A DNA stretch of 64,000 bases, from assembly GCA_011109175.1 (NCBI GenBank), contig RDEW01000007.1, positions 371,712-435,711 on the forward strand, in the 5' to 3' direction. The translations under genes were made by a program, and so were the position numbers. Below, piece by piece: positions 7,504 to 50,912 of the stretch (the first letter of the stretch is position 1; each line of letters opens with the position of its first letter). This DNA comes from Dicyema japonicum. Lineage: Eukaryota > Animalia > Dicyemida. The notes beneath the pieces are model-generated. The model was not told where the DNA came from, did no database searches, and was given only the letters and a program-made list of their open reading frames with translations.

Positions 7504-7537
7504 TTCTATACCGTTAAAACTCCTACTCAAACAAAAA

Positions 7538-7680
7538 ACCTAAACCCTAACCCTAGTCTTTAATCCAAACACTAATCCCTAACCCTAATCTATAACCCAT
7601 AACCATAAATATAAACCCTAACTTTAAATCGTAATTTTTATCCTTAAACCTAAAAATATCATAAAACCTATCCCCTAGCC
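7538..7680 (+). repeat. Degenerate interstitial telomere-like (CCCTAA)-type repeats
   Basis: CCTAAACCCTAACCCTAG, ATCCCTAACCCTAATC, AAACCCTAAC, AAACCTAAAA and variants. Confidence 0.6.
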
Positions 7681-30627: not shown

Positions 30628-30636
30628 TGGATTGCA

Positions 30637-30842
30637 TCCACCTTACTAAGGAGACTCCCAATTTCTCGCAGGCATCAAAAGGATCAAACTATTCTTTGCA
30701 CTAGGAGATAATTTCGTTACCTGCAGACATTTTTGGGAATCGCTGAAACCGTAAGGATCAAGGAGTTAGTTAGTTTGGTTTTACCCTGGATCTAACGAAT
30801 AATTTCATTTTTATAATTTATTAAAAAGATTTCAATGGGCTT
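30637..30842 (+). repeat. 206-bp block (LINE 3' end with TTAG tail) duplicated at 33071-33277; both copies abut single Ns
   Basis: Identical sequence ATCCACCTTACTAAGG...AATGGGCTT at both sites. Confidence 0.9.
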
Positions 30843-31058
30843 NTTTGATAATTTGTTATAAGACAAAGATTCTTTTCGATGCCATCGAAGATAAAAAAAA
30901 ACGTTTTTATTACGTGAAGTGAGATTAGAGAGAGGAGGAAATTGAATTGAAATATAAGCAAATATTTTTTGATGTGTATGGAGTTTAATCGAAATGACAA
31001 TAAATAAGGTTAAAACCTTTGATGAATATTTATAGTCGAATTCAGACTGAAATCTTGA

Positions 31059-32518
31059 ATGATGTTAGTCAGTCTTTTGTTATTTCTCAATATATTTTCC
31101 AGTAAATTGTAAAATTTGATTAATAGAGATTGGATTAAGAAATCTTGGAGAAGGTAATATAATTTTTAATAAATAGGCGAGTTAGAAGATACCACTTCAT
31201 TAATTAAAAGTATAACTAGTCATTCCTATAGCTTCTACTACTCTGTCGACTACAGCAGGTTTAATGATTAGTCATTCCTATAGCTTCTACTACTCCGTCG
31301 ACGACAGCAGGTTTAATGATTAGTCATTCCTATAGCTTCTACTACTACGACTTCAAAGATAGAGTGTCTGTGATGTTATGCACAAATATGTCTGGAAATC
31401 ATAAATTAAGCTTTTATTGATTGGAAAATCAATAATGCCAAAGTGTTTTAAAAAATATGAATATCGTTGTTCTGTTTCGTATCANATTGTAAAATTTGAT
31501 TAATAGAGATTGGATTAAGAAATCTTGGAGAAAGTAATATAATTTTTAATAAATAGGCGAGTTAGAAGATACCACTTCATTAATTAAAAGTATAACTAGT
31601 CATTCCTATAGCTTCTACTACTCTGTCGACTACAGCAGGTTTAATGATTAGTCATTCCTATAGCTTCTACTACTACGACTTCAAAAATAGAGTGTCTGTG
31701 ATGTTATGCAAAAATATGTCTGGAAATCATAAATTAAGCTTTTATTGATTGGAAAATNGTCAGATTCTACCACTCGATTAACTAAAGGTATAATGACTAG
31801 TCATTTCCCTAGCTTCTTTCACTTTATGATATCTATTTCCTGAAGGTATAATGAATAATCATTTCCGTAGTTTTTGGTAATCTATTGATGAGAGAAGGTT
31901 TAATGACTAGTCATTCCTATAGCTTCTACTACTCCGTCGACGACTGCAGGTTTGATGACTAGTTATTCTTATAGAATCTAATAATCCGTCGACGACTACA
32001 GGTTTAATGACTGTTCATTATCGTCAGATTCTACCACTTCATTGACAGAAGGTATAATGACTACTTATTTCCCTAGCATCTTTCACTTCATGGAATCTAT
32101 TTCCTGAAGGTATAATGAATAATCATTTCCCTAGTTTTTGGTAATCTATTGATGAGAGCAGGTTTAATGACTAGTCATTCCTCTAGCTTCTACTACTCCG
32201 TCGACGACTGCAGGTTTAATGATTAGTCATTCCTATAGCTTCTACTACTCCGTCGACGACAGCAGGTATTATGACTGTTCATTAACTTTTGCTTCTACCA
32301 CTCCATTGACTGAAGGTAAAATGACTGGTCATCGCTCTAGCATCAACCAATCCATCAGCAAAAAATCTGACAGCAATTATTCTATTATTGACTAATACAA
32401 CCTACGAAAGAAGGTAAAATGACTGGTCATCGCTCTAGCATCAACCAATCCATCAGCAAAAAATCTGACAGCAATTATTCTATTATTGACTAATACAACC
32501 TACGAAAAAATTAATTAG
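31059..32518 (+). CDS. Micro-exon/micro-intron gene for a secreted mucin-like Ser/Thr-rich protein (interrupted by Ns and a Tigger fragment)
   Basis: Exon 1 MMLVSLLLFLNIFS (31059-31101); phase-1 GT-AG introns of 22-26 nt; internal exons all multiples of 3 (24/27/33 nt): IGLRNLGE, ELEDTTSLIK, ASTTPSTTA, ESNNPSTTT, DSTTSLTE, ASFTSWNLFPE, VFGNLLMRE; terminal exon ..NLTAIILLLTNTTYEKIN*. Confidence 0.85.
31210..32340 (+). repeat. ~52-bp tandem repeat (25-nt intron + 27-nt exon) with a ~264-bp five-unit higher-order repeat
   Basis: Period 52 (e.g. 31271/31323, 31910/31962); higher-order starts at 31759 and 32023; intron core AATGACTAGTCATT is palindromic. Confidence 0.9.
31352..31484 (+). mobile_element. 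Tigger DDE fragment fused into a micro-exon (repeated at ~31680-31757)
   Basis: RVSVML..NMSGNHKL..LIGKS matches ORF 55382-55684. Confidence 0.75.
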
Positions 32519-32649
32519 TTTGATTCATTTGTTTTTTGTTGAGTAATAATCTGTATTCTTTATTTATATCATACAATTAATGTGTATTTTCTAGACATCT
32601 ATTCTTTTTTTCTTATTTTTTCTTTTTTAATGTAATCAAACTCTTATTT

Positions 32650-33069
32650 ACCTTTTTAATCAAAAATCTTTAAACAACTAATTTAGTTAGTTTATCGTAA
32701 ATTTGCCGGAATACTATCTGAGCACACGAAAAAGGTGCGAGGACTGCTAAGATAAGCGTAAATGATCACATTAGTACTAGGATTCCTGGGAGCTGGAAAA
32801 TATCTCATTAATATATTAAATAGCTGAGGACTCAAGACTGATCCTTGTGGCAGTCCCCTCTTCATAACAATCTTTTCAGATATAAATCCTCCACATCTCA
32901 TAAATGATCTTCTCCCTGTCAGGAGATTTCTTTACCAATCAAGTAAAACTTTGAGATTCCAGCTGCGACAAGCAGATAATACAGTGTGTCATGCCAGACA
33001 CTATCGAAGGCCTTCGATATATCTAGACAGACGACACTCAGCTGATATTTGAAATTCCTGGCCTTCTCA
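32650..33069 (-). mobile_element. I-like LINE RT fragment
   Basis: RGLPQGSVLSPQLFNI. Confidence 0.7.
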
Positions 33070-34059
33070 NATCCACCTTACTAAGGAGACTCCCAATTTC
33101 TCGCAGGCATCAAAAGGATCAAACTATTCTTTGCACTAGGAGATAATTTCGTTACCTGCAGACATTTTTGGGAATCGCTGAAACCGTAAGGATCAAGGAG
33201 TTAGTTAGTTTGGTTTTACCCTGGATCTAACGAATAATTTCATTTTTATAATTTATTAAAAAGATTTCAATGGGCTTTCCGCATATAAAAAAGTTATAGA
33301 GTGCAATGAAAAATTGCAGAAGCATTTAGACAACTTGATATAGACCGTAGTGTCTACAGCGCTGGAAAACTGACAAAAATTTGTCAAATTTATCAGAACT
33401 AATGTTTTTTTCCAGATGACATGCATTTCAATTAAAAATAGCATTTATGTCAATAATTAATAGTTTTGAATGCAGTGGAATTGAATCAAAAAGCAATGAA
33501 GTTCCTATTATTTTATCATTAAAGGCTACAGTGAATTTTAGCAGAAAACAATATGAAAATGTCAATATCGCATGTGTTGAAATAGATATTGAATATGACT
33601 GTATTTCTAATAATTGGAAAAATTATTCTATAATAATGAAAATTTTGATGTATATTCAAATCGTTTTTGTATTCATTACTTTTTTGGCATTTCGGAATGC
33701 TTGCACAATTATGAAATTTATAATAAGATATTAGTATTATGAACAATCCATTGTTGAAGAATACATTATGAACACTATTCTGCCGAAGAATAATTGGTAT
33801 TTAGTTTTTAGTCAATTTATTCAAAAAAATCTTGGTTTTAATTTTTATTTTTTGATCCTAATATTTGTAATAATAAATTGTAGCGTGGCGTTGTGTGGTC
33901 CACCAATTTAAAAAATTCAATAAGATTTGGCAACTCCCTGAGGGCTTCTAATACCCTCCCGAAATGGACAATTAGACCCCTTCGCCCCGGGGTCATTATC
34001 GTCCCCCCGGCGATGTGTTTCAAGAAAGTATAAACATTCCCGGCGAAAACCTTCAGCCA

Positions 34060-35931: not shown

Positions 35932-36769
35932 ATGCTCCTATTACTAGGTTTATTAAATAAATTAATAATAGTCATATTTGCGTGTTTAGTAAGCAATAGA
36001 AATGTGTCGCAGAATATTGATACTTTTGAAAAATTGTCTATTAATGTCCCTGTGTGGAGTGGATTCGATAATAACCGCGTTGTATCGTTGTTTAGTGGGA
36101 TAATTGAAGTTGAATATAAAATTAATAATACTGTAATCAGGTTATATTTATAAAGATAAAATATGAAAATTTAATTGACGCAATTTTTTACTTTAAATTA
36201 CCACGAAATTTTTCACCTTATGAGCTAAAATGGAAGAAAAATGATGTAGAATTCAAAATTTTAGCTTCCCATGTATCAAAAAAAATATATTTTTTCTGGG
36301 AATTAACATTTATTTCCATTCATAGACATATGTTTACTCCAAGTATTAATATTTGGACGACTGGTTATTACAACTGCTCTGAGTAGTCGTAAATATTTCT
36401 GAATCTGCAACTATAAAAATAAGAGATATGAAAATGCAACTATCGAAATCAGATAATAACAAAATATTTACTGGAAAAAGTAGTTATAATAACTGATAGT
36501 TAGCACATGGATGTGATTTTGAAAGAAATCTCCAATTCGAATCAACATCCCATATGAGTAAAAAAATAAAAACAACTACTTCGCAACGTTATATAAAAAA
36601 TACAATGCACTCTCATACAATAAGTAATATTAAGTTAAATTTAGAAATCAAATCTCCAGTACTAGTTTGTTTATTTGGTGGGATAGTTGTGATCTTTGCC
36701 GTCGTTTATCTAATAATATATAAAAGAAGACGTTTTTATCCATTACAGAATGGCATATTTAATTACTAA
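35932..36769 (+). pseudogene. Type-I single-pass membrane protein with possible Ig-like segment; several stops and frameshifts
   Basis: Signal-like MLLLL|VIFACLVS after a 24-nt intron; ELKWKKN and TTGYYNC; 21-nt intron before TM VLVCLFGGIVVIFAVVYLII followed by YKRRR. Confidence 0.55.
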
Positions 36770-36981
36770 TATTATTTTCTTTTAGATTTTAAAAATGACA
36801 ATTATTTCATATAATGCTTAATAGTTTGTTTATTTGGTGGGATAGTTGTGATCTTTGCCGTCATTTATCTAATAAAATATAAAAGAAGACGTTTTTATCC
36901 ATTACAGATTGGCATATTTAATTACTAATATTATTTTCTTTTAGATTTTAAAAATGACAATTATTTCATATAATGCTTAAT
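36663..36981. repeat. 159-bp tandem duplication of the TM/cytoplasmic exon and 3' flank
   Basis: TAGTTTGTTTATTTGGTGGGATAG at 36663 and 36822. Confidence 0.9.
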
Positions 36982-37589
36982 ATTTTTGAAGTTGTTAGTT
37001 GGTCTGAGATTGATGTTGTGACGTATCTCTAACGAATGAAACTTCAAGAAAAGTAAAATCTATGTTCAATTTATTATCGTGTCCATCAACGTAGTGATTA
37101 CTTTTTCATTTATGATTATATATAAATAATTCATTGATATTAAACGACCAAAATAACATGGGGGATGTAGAGAAGTGGCTTAGACTGTTTTTGTATTTTA
37201 TAAAGATAGACATTGTATAAGGTGGAGTGATTGTAAAAGTAAGATATCACCGTTGTATGAAAAGTGGTGGATATCTATAGTATTTTTTATTAAGGAGTAA
37301 ATAAAATTTATAATCACAAATTTTACTCGAAAAATATTTCAGAAATTGTGGAATAAATTGGTAGTAAATTTTCCCTTTGATCATAAATTAAAATGGAATA
37401 GCAGACAACATTCTGTGAAGTGGAAAACTCATTTTCGATTCTTTAAAATTTTTAACATAGATAAAAATTTCCAACCCGAAAATATTATTTATTTTTGTGT
37501 TTGACAATAAAATAAAACAATTTAGAAAAATAATCAGTTAATTTATCCCCAGTAAATCATATTTAAAACTGCCATCCATCCAAAGTAAA

Positions 37590-37711
37590 CCCCTACGACA
37601 TTGTCGACGTTGCGTTGCCTCTCACGATTGCAACAGAGATCAACTGGAGTAGCCACCGGGTCTCACGTGCGTCGTGGCTTTTTAGTGTAGCTAAGCGTCC
37701 AAGTTTCTTTA
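37590..37711 (-). mobile_element. CRE-like 3' end
   Basis: RETRWLLQLISVAIVRGNA. Confidence 0.7.
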
Positions 37712-38324
37712 NNNNNNNNNNNNNNNNNNNNNNNNNNNNNNNNNNNNNNNNNNNNNNNNNNNNNNNNNNNNNNNNNNNNNNNNNNNNNNNNNNNNNNNNN
37801 NNNNNNNNNNNNNNNNNNNNNNNNNNNNNNNNNNNNNNNNNNNNNNNNNNNNNNNNNNNNNNNNNNNNNNNNNNNNNNNNNNNNNNNNNNNNNNNNNNNN
37901 NNNNNNNNNNNNNNNNNNNNNNNNNNNNNNNNNNNNNNNNNNNNNNNNNNNNNNNNNNNNNNNNNNNNNNNNNNNNNNNNNNNNNNNNNNNNNNNNNNNN
38001 NNNNNNNNNNNNNNNNNNNNNNNNNNNNNNNNNNNNNNNNNNNNNNNNNNNNNNNNNNNNNNNNNNNNNNNNNNNNNNNNNNNNNNNNNNNNNNNNNNNN
38101 NNNNNNNNNNNNNNNNNNNNNNNNNNNNNNNNNNNNNNNNNNNNNNNNNNNNNNNNNNNNNNNNNNNNNNNNNNNNNNNNNNNNNNNNNNNNNNNNNNNN
38201 NNNNNNNNNNNNNNNNNNNNNNNNNNNNNNNNNNNNNNNNNNNNNNNNNNNNNNNNNNNNNNNNNNNNNNNNNNNNNNNNNNNNNNNNNNNNNNNNNNNN
38301 NNNNNNNNNNNNNNNNNNNNNNNN
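37712..38324. other. Assembly gap (613 N)
   Basis: Run of N. Confidence 1.
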
Positions 38325-38799
38325 GTGTTTGTCAGGAAAAATTGTGTACGCAATTTTGTGAACAAATATAATTTTGAAATTAATTAAATTTTGATAATTT
38401 GTTATTAGACAAAGATTCTTTTCGATGCCATCGAAGATAAAAAAAAAACGTTTTTATTAAGTGAAGTGAGATTAGAGAGAGGAGGAAATTGAATTGAAAT
38501 ATAAGCAAATATTTTGTGATGTGTATGGAGTTTAATCGAAATGACAATAAATAAGGTTAAAACCTTTGATGAATATTTATAGTCGAATTCAGACTGATAT
38601 CTTGAATGATGTTAGTCAGTCTTTTGTTATTTCTTAGTAAAATCACTTAGAAATGCGACCACACAATATCCTCAACCATCTCCCAATCCTTCCACTTTTT
38701 AATCTAATATCCCATTTGACCTTAAATTAACTATGTATTAACCACTGCGCTTGATCACTCTCAGCGCTCGCGACATATTAATTAACCAACCTTCGAAAA

Positions 38800-49213: not shown

Positions 49214-50912
49214 ATGTCTCTTCTTTTCATTTTATCTGTAATTCAAAATTAACACTATTTTTAGATTTCGCTCATCGACTCAGCCCAAAATGGTGAATTC
49301 CTTTGATAAATTTAGATAAAATCTTAACTTGCTATTACACGAACTGGGCAGTTTACAGAAATGGGAATGCCAAGTACGACGCCAAGTACATGTACCCTTA
49401 CCTTTGCACACATATAATGTACGCGTTCGTGAATATCGACTACCAAACTCTGACTATAGTACCGACTGATCCCTGGTCTGACATGCCAGGTTTTAGTCTA
49501 TGACTTAATTTAGATGGACTTGTAACTTTGGAAAAGTCACATCGCTAAAGAAAATCAATCCTGACTTAAAGTCCTTGTGTCTATTGGAGGATGGGCGAGA
49601 CAGATAAAGGAATTCAAACATGCCTCGGGAGTGAAAAAAACAGAAAATTATTTGCACGAAATGCAAAAAAATTTCTTAAAAAATTCAACTTTGATGGATT
49701 AGACGTTGATTGGGAGTATCCTAGTGACAAGAACAAATTCTCTCTTTTGATCAAAGTCCTAAAATAAAAGTAATCCTAAGGCACTTCATGAGGAATTGAA
49801 AATGGACACTTCAGGACTCATATTTGCTGACGGCCGCAGTTTCCGCAGGAGAATGGACGGCTTCAGTTTCCTATGACATTCCATCGATTTCCAAGTAAAG
49901 GTGTTCTGGGATTCTACTAGATATCTTGATCAAATCTACGTCATGACTTATGACTTCTATGGCCAATTTTCAAGCGTGGTTGGGCATCACAGCGGGTTGT
50001 ACTGCTCGATAATAACGACCAATTCTGCACAGTATCTAGAATATTCAGTTTAGGATTTTGCCGTGAAATATTGGAACAAACATGGAGCTCCACTATCAAA
50101 GATTTCGATTGGCGTCCCTACATATGCTCAGGGATTCAAGACTAATACAAAAAAACCACGTCCTGGAGATGAAAAAATTGGTGGAACTCCAAAAGGAAGT
50201 ATATTGTACAATAGCGGGATCCTGGCTTATCTTGAAGTCCCTGTCTTTGATAAATTTAGTACTGTAATGAAGGATATAGAAATGTCTGGGACGACACCCA
50301 AAAAGTGGCTCACGGAGAAAAAGATCACTATTGGCTCGGATATGAGACCATCGAAAGCATTCGTGAAAAAGTTACAAATTCAAATATCTTAGGCAAATTA
50401 TGTCAAAGAGAAAGGATTGGCTGGAATGTTTGTGTGGACTCTAGATTTCGACGACTTTACGGGAAAAGAATGCAACAACGGAAAGAGTCCTTTGATTGGG
50501 GAGATCCACAAGGAACTCAACATTTATCCAGGAATTGTGATTAATTTCTCTAAATCAAGGACTGGGAATCACGATTCGAGACAAAATATATTTCCAGTAT
50601 TTCAACAACGATCAATCGAGACTCCAATCCAAGTAGAAAGAGGACGACTCAAAATAAGACCCCGATTACTCAAGAACCACCAACTGAAAGTTCTGACGTC
50701 AATAATATTGATTTAAGTTTTTATTATAATATATTTTAGACCGGGTTTGCACCAAAGTCGGAGTGTTTGCTCTCCATGGATGTAAAACATTTATTAACTG
50801 CTGCGGACTTGTTGGTCAGACTCCCCGCGTTTTTAAATGCCCGGAAAATTTACTTTTCGATGAAAATTTGAAGACTTGTAATTATCCACATTTGGTTGAT
50901 TGCAATGTCTAA
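49214..50912 (+). CDS. GH18 chitinase with signal peptide, S/T/P linker and CBM14 (ChtBD2) chitin-binding domain; 10 introns of 22-27 nt; apparent 1-nt assembly deletions
   Basis: CYYTNW, LCTHIMYAF, SIGGW, FDGLDVDWEYP (DxDxE intact), MTYDF, GMFVWTLDFDDF; six-Cys CBM14 ending CPENLLFDENLKTCNYPHLVDC; introns 49238-49264, 49293-49315, 49490-49513, 49756-49780, 49895-49920, 50032-50053, 50237-50259, 50371-50392, 50537-50559, 50717-50739. Confidence 0.95.

Follow-up and report, generated by a model that had tools for sequence, protein, structure and literature searches.

The locus at 31059-32518 raises the question of whether a 52-bp tandem repeat with the look of a satellite can be a spliced protein-coding gene. 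It lies in a 64,000-nt stretch of the Dicyema japonicum assembly, which was analysed at its full length and is referred to below as the window. The initial annotation had read the satellite as a spliced gene for a mucin-like secreted protein in which both exons and introns are minimal, and had suggested that variant proteins are made from it. Judging from the DNA, we consider it reasonably probable that the locus is one copy of a multi-copy, lineage-specific family of micro-exon/micro-intron genes for small secreted Ser/Thr-rich proteins. The copy itself is probably a member of that family, and possibly a decayed one.

Exon 1 (31059-31101, 43 nt) begins with an ATG right behind an in-frame TGA, ends in phase 1 and occurs once in the window. 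Its product, MMLVSLLLFLNIFS, consists of 14 hydrophobic residues and reads as signal-peptide-like. A motif-defined scan recovered 16 units of 22-26 nt that start with GT and hold a fixed position in each repeat. Eleven were exactly 25 nt long, and in these G1, T2, A6-T7-G8-A9, T11, T14, A16-T17 and T23-A24-G25 were invariant. The intron-like units began with GT[A/T], were without a polypyrimidine tract, and ended in AG in 15 of 16 cases, the exception ending in TG. The internal pieces (n = 15) measured 24, 27 or 33 nt, and each one was a multiple of three and in phase 1. In the main array they followed one another as 24, 33, 27, 27 and 27 nt, twice over, and then 24 nt, so laid out as 2.2 copies of a 264-bp higher-order repeat. 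Parsing the locus thus reproduced the signal-peptide exon, unit and exon lengths, shared phase and single TG acceptor of the initial annotation, and the peptides quoted there (ASTTPSTTA, ESNNPSTTT, DSTTSLTE, VFGNLLMRE, ASFTSWNLFPE) were correct. The palindrome core of the intron-like units, AATGACTAGTCATT, was found 16 times in the window when up to 2 mismatches were allowed, always at this locus, against an expectation of 0.49. TRF reported the 52-bp repeat at 31217-31346 and 31896-32304, the 264-bp repeat at 31759-32344 and a perfect 98-bp doublet at 32312-32507. The GT..AG parse was strand-specific, with none on the reverse strand. Unspliced, the locus held no long ORF, and the gene would be invisible to an ORF finder, as had been claimed. 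The coordinates are collected in Table 1.

Table 1. Features of the locus and its immediate surroundings, in window coordinates.
Feature	Position	Strand	Remarks
207-bp perfect duplicate	30636-30842	.	Same as 33071-33277; the copies adjoin the outer Ns (30843, 33070) exactly
Contig piece 1	30844-31484	+	Upstream DNA, exons 1-5, transposase fragment; summed depth many-fold above that of the 3' end
Introns 1-5 and exons 2-5	31102-31335	+	Introns 25, 23, 22, 25, 25 nt; exons 27, 33, 27, 27 nt; predicted spliced product open throughout
Pogo-like DDE_1 transposase fragment	31350-31484	+	PF03184, E=0.01, below the curated cut-off
Contig piece 2	31486-31757	+	Redundant near-copy of 31106-31428, minus one 52-bp unit
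Main array	31759-32315	+	First 5 nt are an intron end; 11 micro-exons and introns
In-frame TGA	31827-31829	+	In exon 31813-31845; the sister exon has TGG
GT..TG unit, 26 nt	32266-32291	+	T at 32290 present in reads
First copy of perfect 98-bp duplicate	32312-32409	+	Duplicate not supported by read contigs
Last intron, 25 nt	32316-32340	+	Equals 32414-32438 if the 98-bp unit is single
Terminal exon	32439-32518	+	26 residues; TAG at 32516-32518
LINE reverse-transcriptase fragment	32692-32901	-	RVT_1, E=2e-6; 170 nt past the stop; a neighbour outside the gene

The window had a G+C content of 33-44% and contained many LINE reverse-transcriptase and endonuclease fragments; the published D. japonicum assembly has a G+C content of 36.7%, 49% repeats and gapped scaffolds (PMC6736024). 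An interstitial telomere-like repeat of CCCTAA variants (2.3 copies of a 32-nt unit) was seen at 7536-7609, and a gap of 613 Ns at 37712-38324, which is crossed by meaningless ORFs on both strands (37615-38365). About 4 kb downstream of the locus, a 159-bp unit is present twice with 97% identity (36663-36986). In one frame, its TRF consensus has the appearance of a transmembrane helix with a short basic tail and a stop behind it, and the repeat could be the duplicated last exon of a membrane protein.

A GH18 chitinase gene at 49214-50912 on the forward strand, with a DGLDVDWEYP motif and a Cys-rich C-terminal exon, served for comparison of introns. Its ten introns were 22-27 nt long, started with GT and ended with TAG or AAG, and the units of the array fit them in size and ends. 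The frame of the chitinase gene after splicing jumps at least twice mid-gene (around 49520-49600 and 49780-50030), from which it would be either a pseudogene or a gene with indel errors or misplaced intron borders. According to published work, the shortest animal introns are those of myxobolid myxozoans and D. japonicum only (PMC13644364; PMC6736024). Introns of 22-27 nt being the norm in this genome, the description of both exons and introns as minimal held for the micro-exons but did not mark out the introns; only the micro-exons and the array with one exon per repeat are unusual.

The coding signal was assessed on 13 distinct exons, with the introns defined by the repeat motif alone. The phase frame had 1 stop in 107 codons, and the other two frames had 10 and 9. 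When each exon was shuffled, at most one stop was obtained with P=0.007, and about six exon classes were all multiples of 3, for which the chance is roughly (1/3)^6; the exons are paralogous, so these frame statistics and P values overstate independence. Related exon classes differed by indels of 3, 9 and 9 nt. The length changes of the introns were +1, -2 and -3 nt, mostly not multiples of three, and the two 1-nt deletions seen in array contigs were both within introns. A free dynamic-programming search for spliced ORFs gave 332 coding nt, which is not above the shuffles (mean 254, sd 69) and no better than other parts of the window, and it was dropped as evidence of coding. It is therefore the regularity of the parse, not the mere fact that one exists, that carries the signal.

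Divergence was compared between the two copies of the 264-bp repeat (31764-32027 and 32028-32291). Differences were found at 16 of 138 exon sites (11.6%) and 14 of 126 intron sites (11.1%), and synonymous and non-synonymous rates were about the same (dN/dS about 1). Variant letters in read contigs were likewise split evenly, with 18 in exons and 17 in introns. The residues accordingly bear no mark of purifying selection; the frame alone does.

Taken with the match to local introns, the symmetric exons, the near stop-free frame and the signal-peptide-like N-terminus make a spliced gene for a secreted Ser/Thr-rich protein the best fit. The layout, the frame statistics, the agreement with local introns and the faults of the assembly are demonstrated by the data, whereas splicing and, for the product, secretion and glycosylation are what we infer. 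Each repeat of 8-11 residues would have a phase-1 symmetric micro-exon to itself (24, 27 or 33 nt), with an intron of about 25 nt behind it. Unequal crossing-over or slippage would have multiplied exon and intron together in the DNA, and so produced the 52-bp 'satellite' and its 264-bp higher-order repeat. Retention of an intron shifts the frame and brings in stops. A protein would be possible only with every intron removed, because the introns contain stops and the 52-nt period is not divisible by three; the introns would be removed one by one, each tiny intron being recognised as a unit.

Without the redundant contig and the extra 98 bp, the predicted spliced protein comes to about 177 residues, of which the 5' contig supplies 52 and the array 125. 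Like mucins and other PTS-repeat proteins, it would carry tandem Ser/Thr-rich repeats behind a signal-peptide-like N-terminus, and it has no Cys. Unlike them, it contains 35-38% Ser+Thr and 2-6% Pro, its repeats are interrupted by the non-mucin hydrophobic cassettes VFGNLLMRE and ASFTSWNLFPE, and its repeats are spread over micro-exons, whereas classical mucin repeats sit in one large exon. On composition, 'mucin-like' is only a moderately apt name. The terminal exon contributes a short hydrophobic stretch and two N-x-S/T sites near the polar C-terminus. Reading of the sequence led us to reject both a GPI anchor and a transmembrane tail, since the chain has a hydrophobic stretch of about 7 residues and a polar C-terminus; we read the predicted product as secreted and not membrane-anchored.

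Four read runs (2019, one sample, one study), recovered alike with a 3.5-kb query and with a 310-nt query from the 3' end, were aligned to 30900-32700. All four behaved as DNA: the contigs were unspliced, depth was flat over the terminal exon and the DNA behind it, and one read contig covered 31052-31294 with no differences and four introns kept. Three of the runs had a single-copy depth of about 50-95 and the remaining one of about 1,100, which fits a rough estimate from the read-pair counts of the mate-pair and paired-end DNA libraries (PMC6736024). On the 1.8 kb, 118-650 contigs were obtained per run, one in three with an identity of 90-95%. The summed depth of exon 1 and of the array was 10-30 times that of 32303-32700, a ratio not to be taken as a formal copy number. 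At loose ends and joints we saw relatives with a different continuation of exon 2, with missing units (58-nt skips) and with reordered units. The excess of contigs, the depth and the loose ends together indicate that the locus belongs to a multi-copy family, or that the array is longer than assembled, or both. A read contig at about 0.6 of the depth also carried a variant of the 3' end (32217-32487), either an allele or a paralogue. It differs by 11 substitutions, reads AA where the TG acceptor stands, and in the terminal exon has Met instead of Leu-Leu-Leu through a net 6-nt change that keeps the frame.

The reads and the layout of the assembly also exposed faults in this copy. Single Ns stand at 30843, 31485, 31758 and 33070, and those at 31485 and 31758 split the locus into three contigs. 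SSPACE puts a single n where overlapping contigs are joined. The scaffolder of the D. japonicum genome project was SSPACE (PMC6736024). With a perfect 207-bp copy at the Ns on both sides, the flanks would be two overlapping contigs between which scaffolding dropped the locus. The duplicate is thus a probable scaffolding artefact, and about 2.2 kb (30844-33069) may be misplaced. Scaffolding is the sole basis for the linkage of exon 1 to the array and for the genomic place of the locus.

As assembled, reading from the ATG stops at a TGA (31371-31373) past exon 5, inside the transposase fragment. This fragment, whose PF03184 match resembles the start of the pogo/Tigger DDE_1 transposase domain, is joined to a truncated repeat exon in both near-copies (31350-31484 and 31678-31757). 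Its read depth was 20-80 times that of the 3' end, and the loose read ends before 31350 are the element's own continuation. The pogo/Tigger-like DNA-transposon family is abundant, though the window is otherwise dominated by LINEs.

Within the array, the in-frame TGA was not uniform among the reads, as a variant contig with G at 31829 accounted for about half of the depth in three of the four runs. At position 32290, related copies account for most of the depth and carry A, so that the unit ends in AG, while one variant contig reads AA. The 98-bp duplicate is probably an assembly artefact; one unbranched contig links 32311 to 32410 at about single-copy depth in all four runs. With two 98-bp copies as assembled, the final exons are 73 and 80 nt and the frame is shifted, and with one copy there is a single terminal exon that ends at the TAG of Table 1. 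The assembled copy is therefore not intact: it comprises three contigs, a transposon junction, an in-frame stop, a non-AG acceptor and a spurious duplicate. The claim that the satellite is a spliced gene stands as the best fit to the repeat, as a prediction, and is weakened by the state of the assembled copy. In view of its composite, damaged state, the copy may represent either one paralogue in decay or several paralogues wrongly assembled into one, and because the assembly is unreliable the locus is a weak exemplar.

The main rival explanation is a dead derivative of a micro-exon gene, with this copy or the whole local array now an untranslated pseudogene or satellite that drifts neutrally. 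The equal divergence of exons and introns at a dN/dS of about 1 is what such drift would leave, and the in-frame TGA, the loss of AG at 32290-32291 in both the assembled copy and a variant contig, the fusion of a truncated exon with the transposase fragment and its stop, and the LINE fragments on all sides point the same way. Yet the exon length changes are all multiples of three, one variant contig included, the phase frame is still almost stop-free, and about half of the depth has TGG instead of TGA. The damage may reflect mixing of paralogues in a short-read assembly, and weak purifying selection would be expected anyway for a low-complexity Ser/Thr protein. We hold a dead array to be a possibility, if on balance an unlikely one.

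The initial annotation had proposed a generator of variants, in which symmetric micro-exons are skipped in combinations to give many secreted isoforms, as in the micro-exon genes (MEGs) of schistosomes. All internal exons are symmetric and in phase 1, so any skip keeps the frame, and non-mucin cassettes occur among the Ser/Thr ones. If the TG acceptor is dead, moreover, the next acceptor would force a splice of 75 nt and one 24-nt exon would be skipped in frame. But only symmetric units can amplify in frame, and the build-up of the array therefore explains the symmetry equally well without exon skipping. Systems with very short introns recognise introns, not exons, and mostly show intron retention, which would give stops here. 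Skipping one exon would need an intron of 75-80 nt, against 22-27 nt for ordinary introns; exon skipping is thus disfavoured, as it demands introns about three times the normal length in a genome that we infer to be intron-recognising. Such a generator seems to us very unlikely. Least probable of all is a plain non-coding satellite with GT..AG spacing and an open frame by coincidence, since, although TRF calls an ordinary 52-bp/264-bp tandem repeat, the free spliced-ORF search is unexceptional and the substitutions look neutral, the expected lack of frame constraint was not what the head-to-tail array displayed: its exon parts are 3n in length, openness is confined to one frame that the signal-peptide-like ATG exon and the terminal exon share, and its intron-like parts agree with the local introns in both size and termini.

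The favoured reading, a spliced micro-exon gene with tiny introns, has partial counterparts among known systems. The titin PEVK exons, the 54-bp collagen exons and the spider Flag silk gene are one-exon-per-repeat genes that arose by tandem duplication of exon and intron. Their exons are symmetric, their arrays have no likeness to a minisatellite, and their introns measure from hundreds to thousands of bases; in Flag silk the introns are more alike than the exons. The locus likewise has a repeat unit made of an exon and an intron, with symmetric exons, and as in Flag silk the introns are more alike than the exons (mean pairwise identity over all units 77% and 66%, respectively). Compared with titin PEVK or Flag silk, the scale is ten to a hundred times smaller, with an entire unit of about 52 bp.

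As far as two accounts of Schistosoma MEGs describe them (PMC10526429, PMC4350168), the CDS is made up mostly of symmetric exons of <81 nt with 3n lengths, there is a signal-peptide exon, and the products are small, secreted, lineage-specific parasite proteins; the introns are given in one of these accounts as long, from hundreds of bases up to 5 kb (PMC10526429). The locus shares the symmetric micro-exon CDS, with 15 internal exons, the N-terminal signal-peptide-like exon and, as predicted, a small secreted product. It differs in its introns of 22-26 nt and in its tandem satellite layout, which the exons of MEGs do not have. For MEGs, isoforms with skipped exons have been documented; at the locus they would be a prediction. 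The array introns are like the ultra-short introns of D. japonicum and myxobolids in length (22-26 nt), in their GT[A/T] start and mostly AG end, and in being without a polypyrimidine tract (PMC13644364). They are unlike them in sharing a family-specific consensus with a 14-nt palindrome, which is absent from ordinary introns, and the array exons of 24-33 nt contrast with a D. japonicum mean of 198 nt (PMC6736024). The palindrome was also considered as a stable RNA hairpin, and this was rejected (-1 kcal/mol, z about 0).

Two predicted spliced peptides (52 and 80 residues) had no match in a protein homologue search, nor had the terminal exon against 1.84 billion representatives, and no sequence kinship to MEGs was found with these three queries. 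A control exon from the chitinase gene of the window was also blank, which makes the protein results uninformative, on expression as well; the collections searched apparently hold no proteins of this organism, at least at those query lengths. The exon-exon junction pattern and the intron consensus each gave 0 matches in metagenome contigs, and no Rfam family was matched. In the literature no link between dicyemids and micro-exons was found, and papers that mention both dicyemids and mucin looked irrelevant, judging by title.

A wider proposal, which we advance as speculative and think rather improbable, is that dicyemids hold a whole class of 'spliced satellites'. Units of about 50 bp would each combine a symmetric micro-exon with a near-minimal intron, and array length, unit loss and perhaps splice choice would rapidly vary a secreted or surface Ser/Thr-rich coat at the host interface. 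The locus would then belong to a family of about 10-30 copies, kept out of the annotation by repeat-masking and short-read assembly.

If the locus is spliced, DNA with the look of a non-coding minisatellite can encode tandem-repeat proteins. Alternating exons of 24-33 nt and introns of about 25 nt would put to an extreme test how near to one another spliceosomes can act, and also how introns are recognised when almost all of their bases may serve as signal. A class of secreted or surface proteins would, moreover, be missing from the 5,012 genes published for D. japonicum (PMC6736024), with repeat masking ahead of the mapping of transcript evidence as one possible cause (PMC6736024), and that class would likely act at the host-parasite interface.
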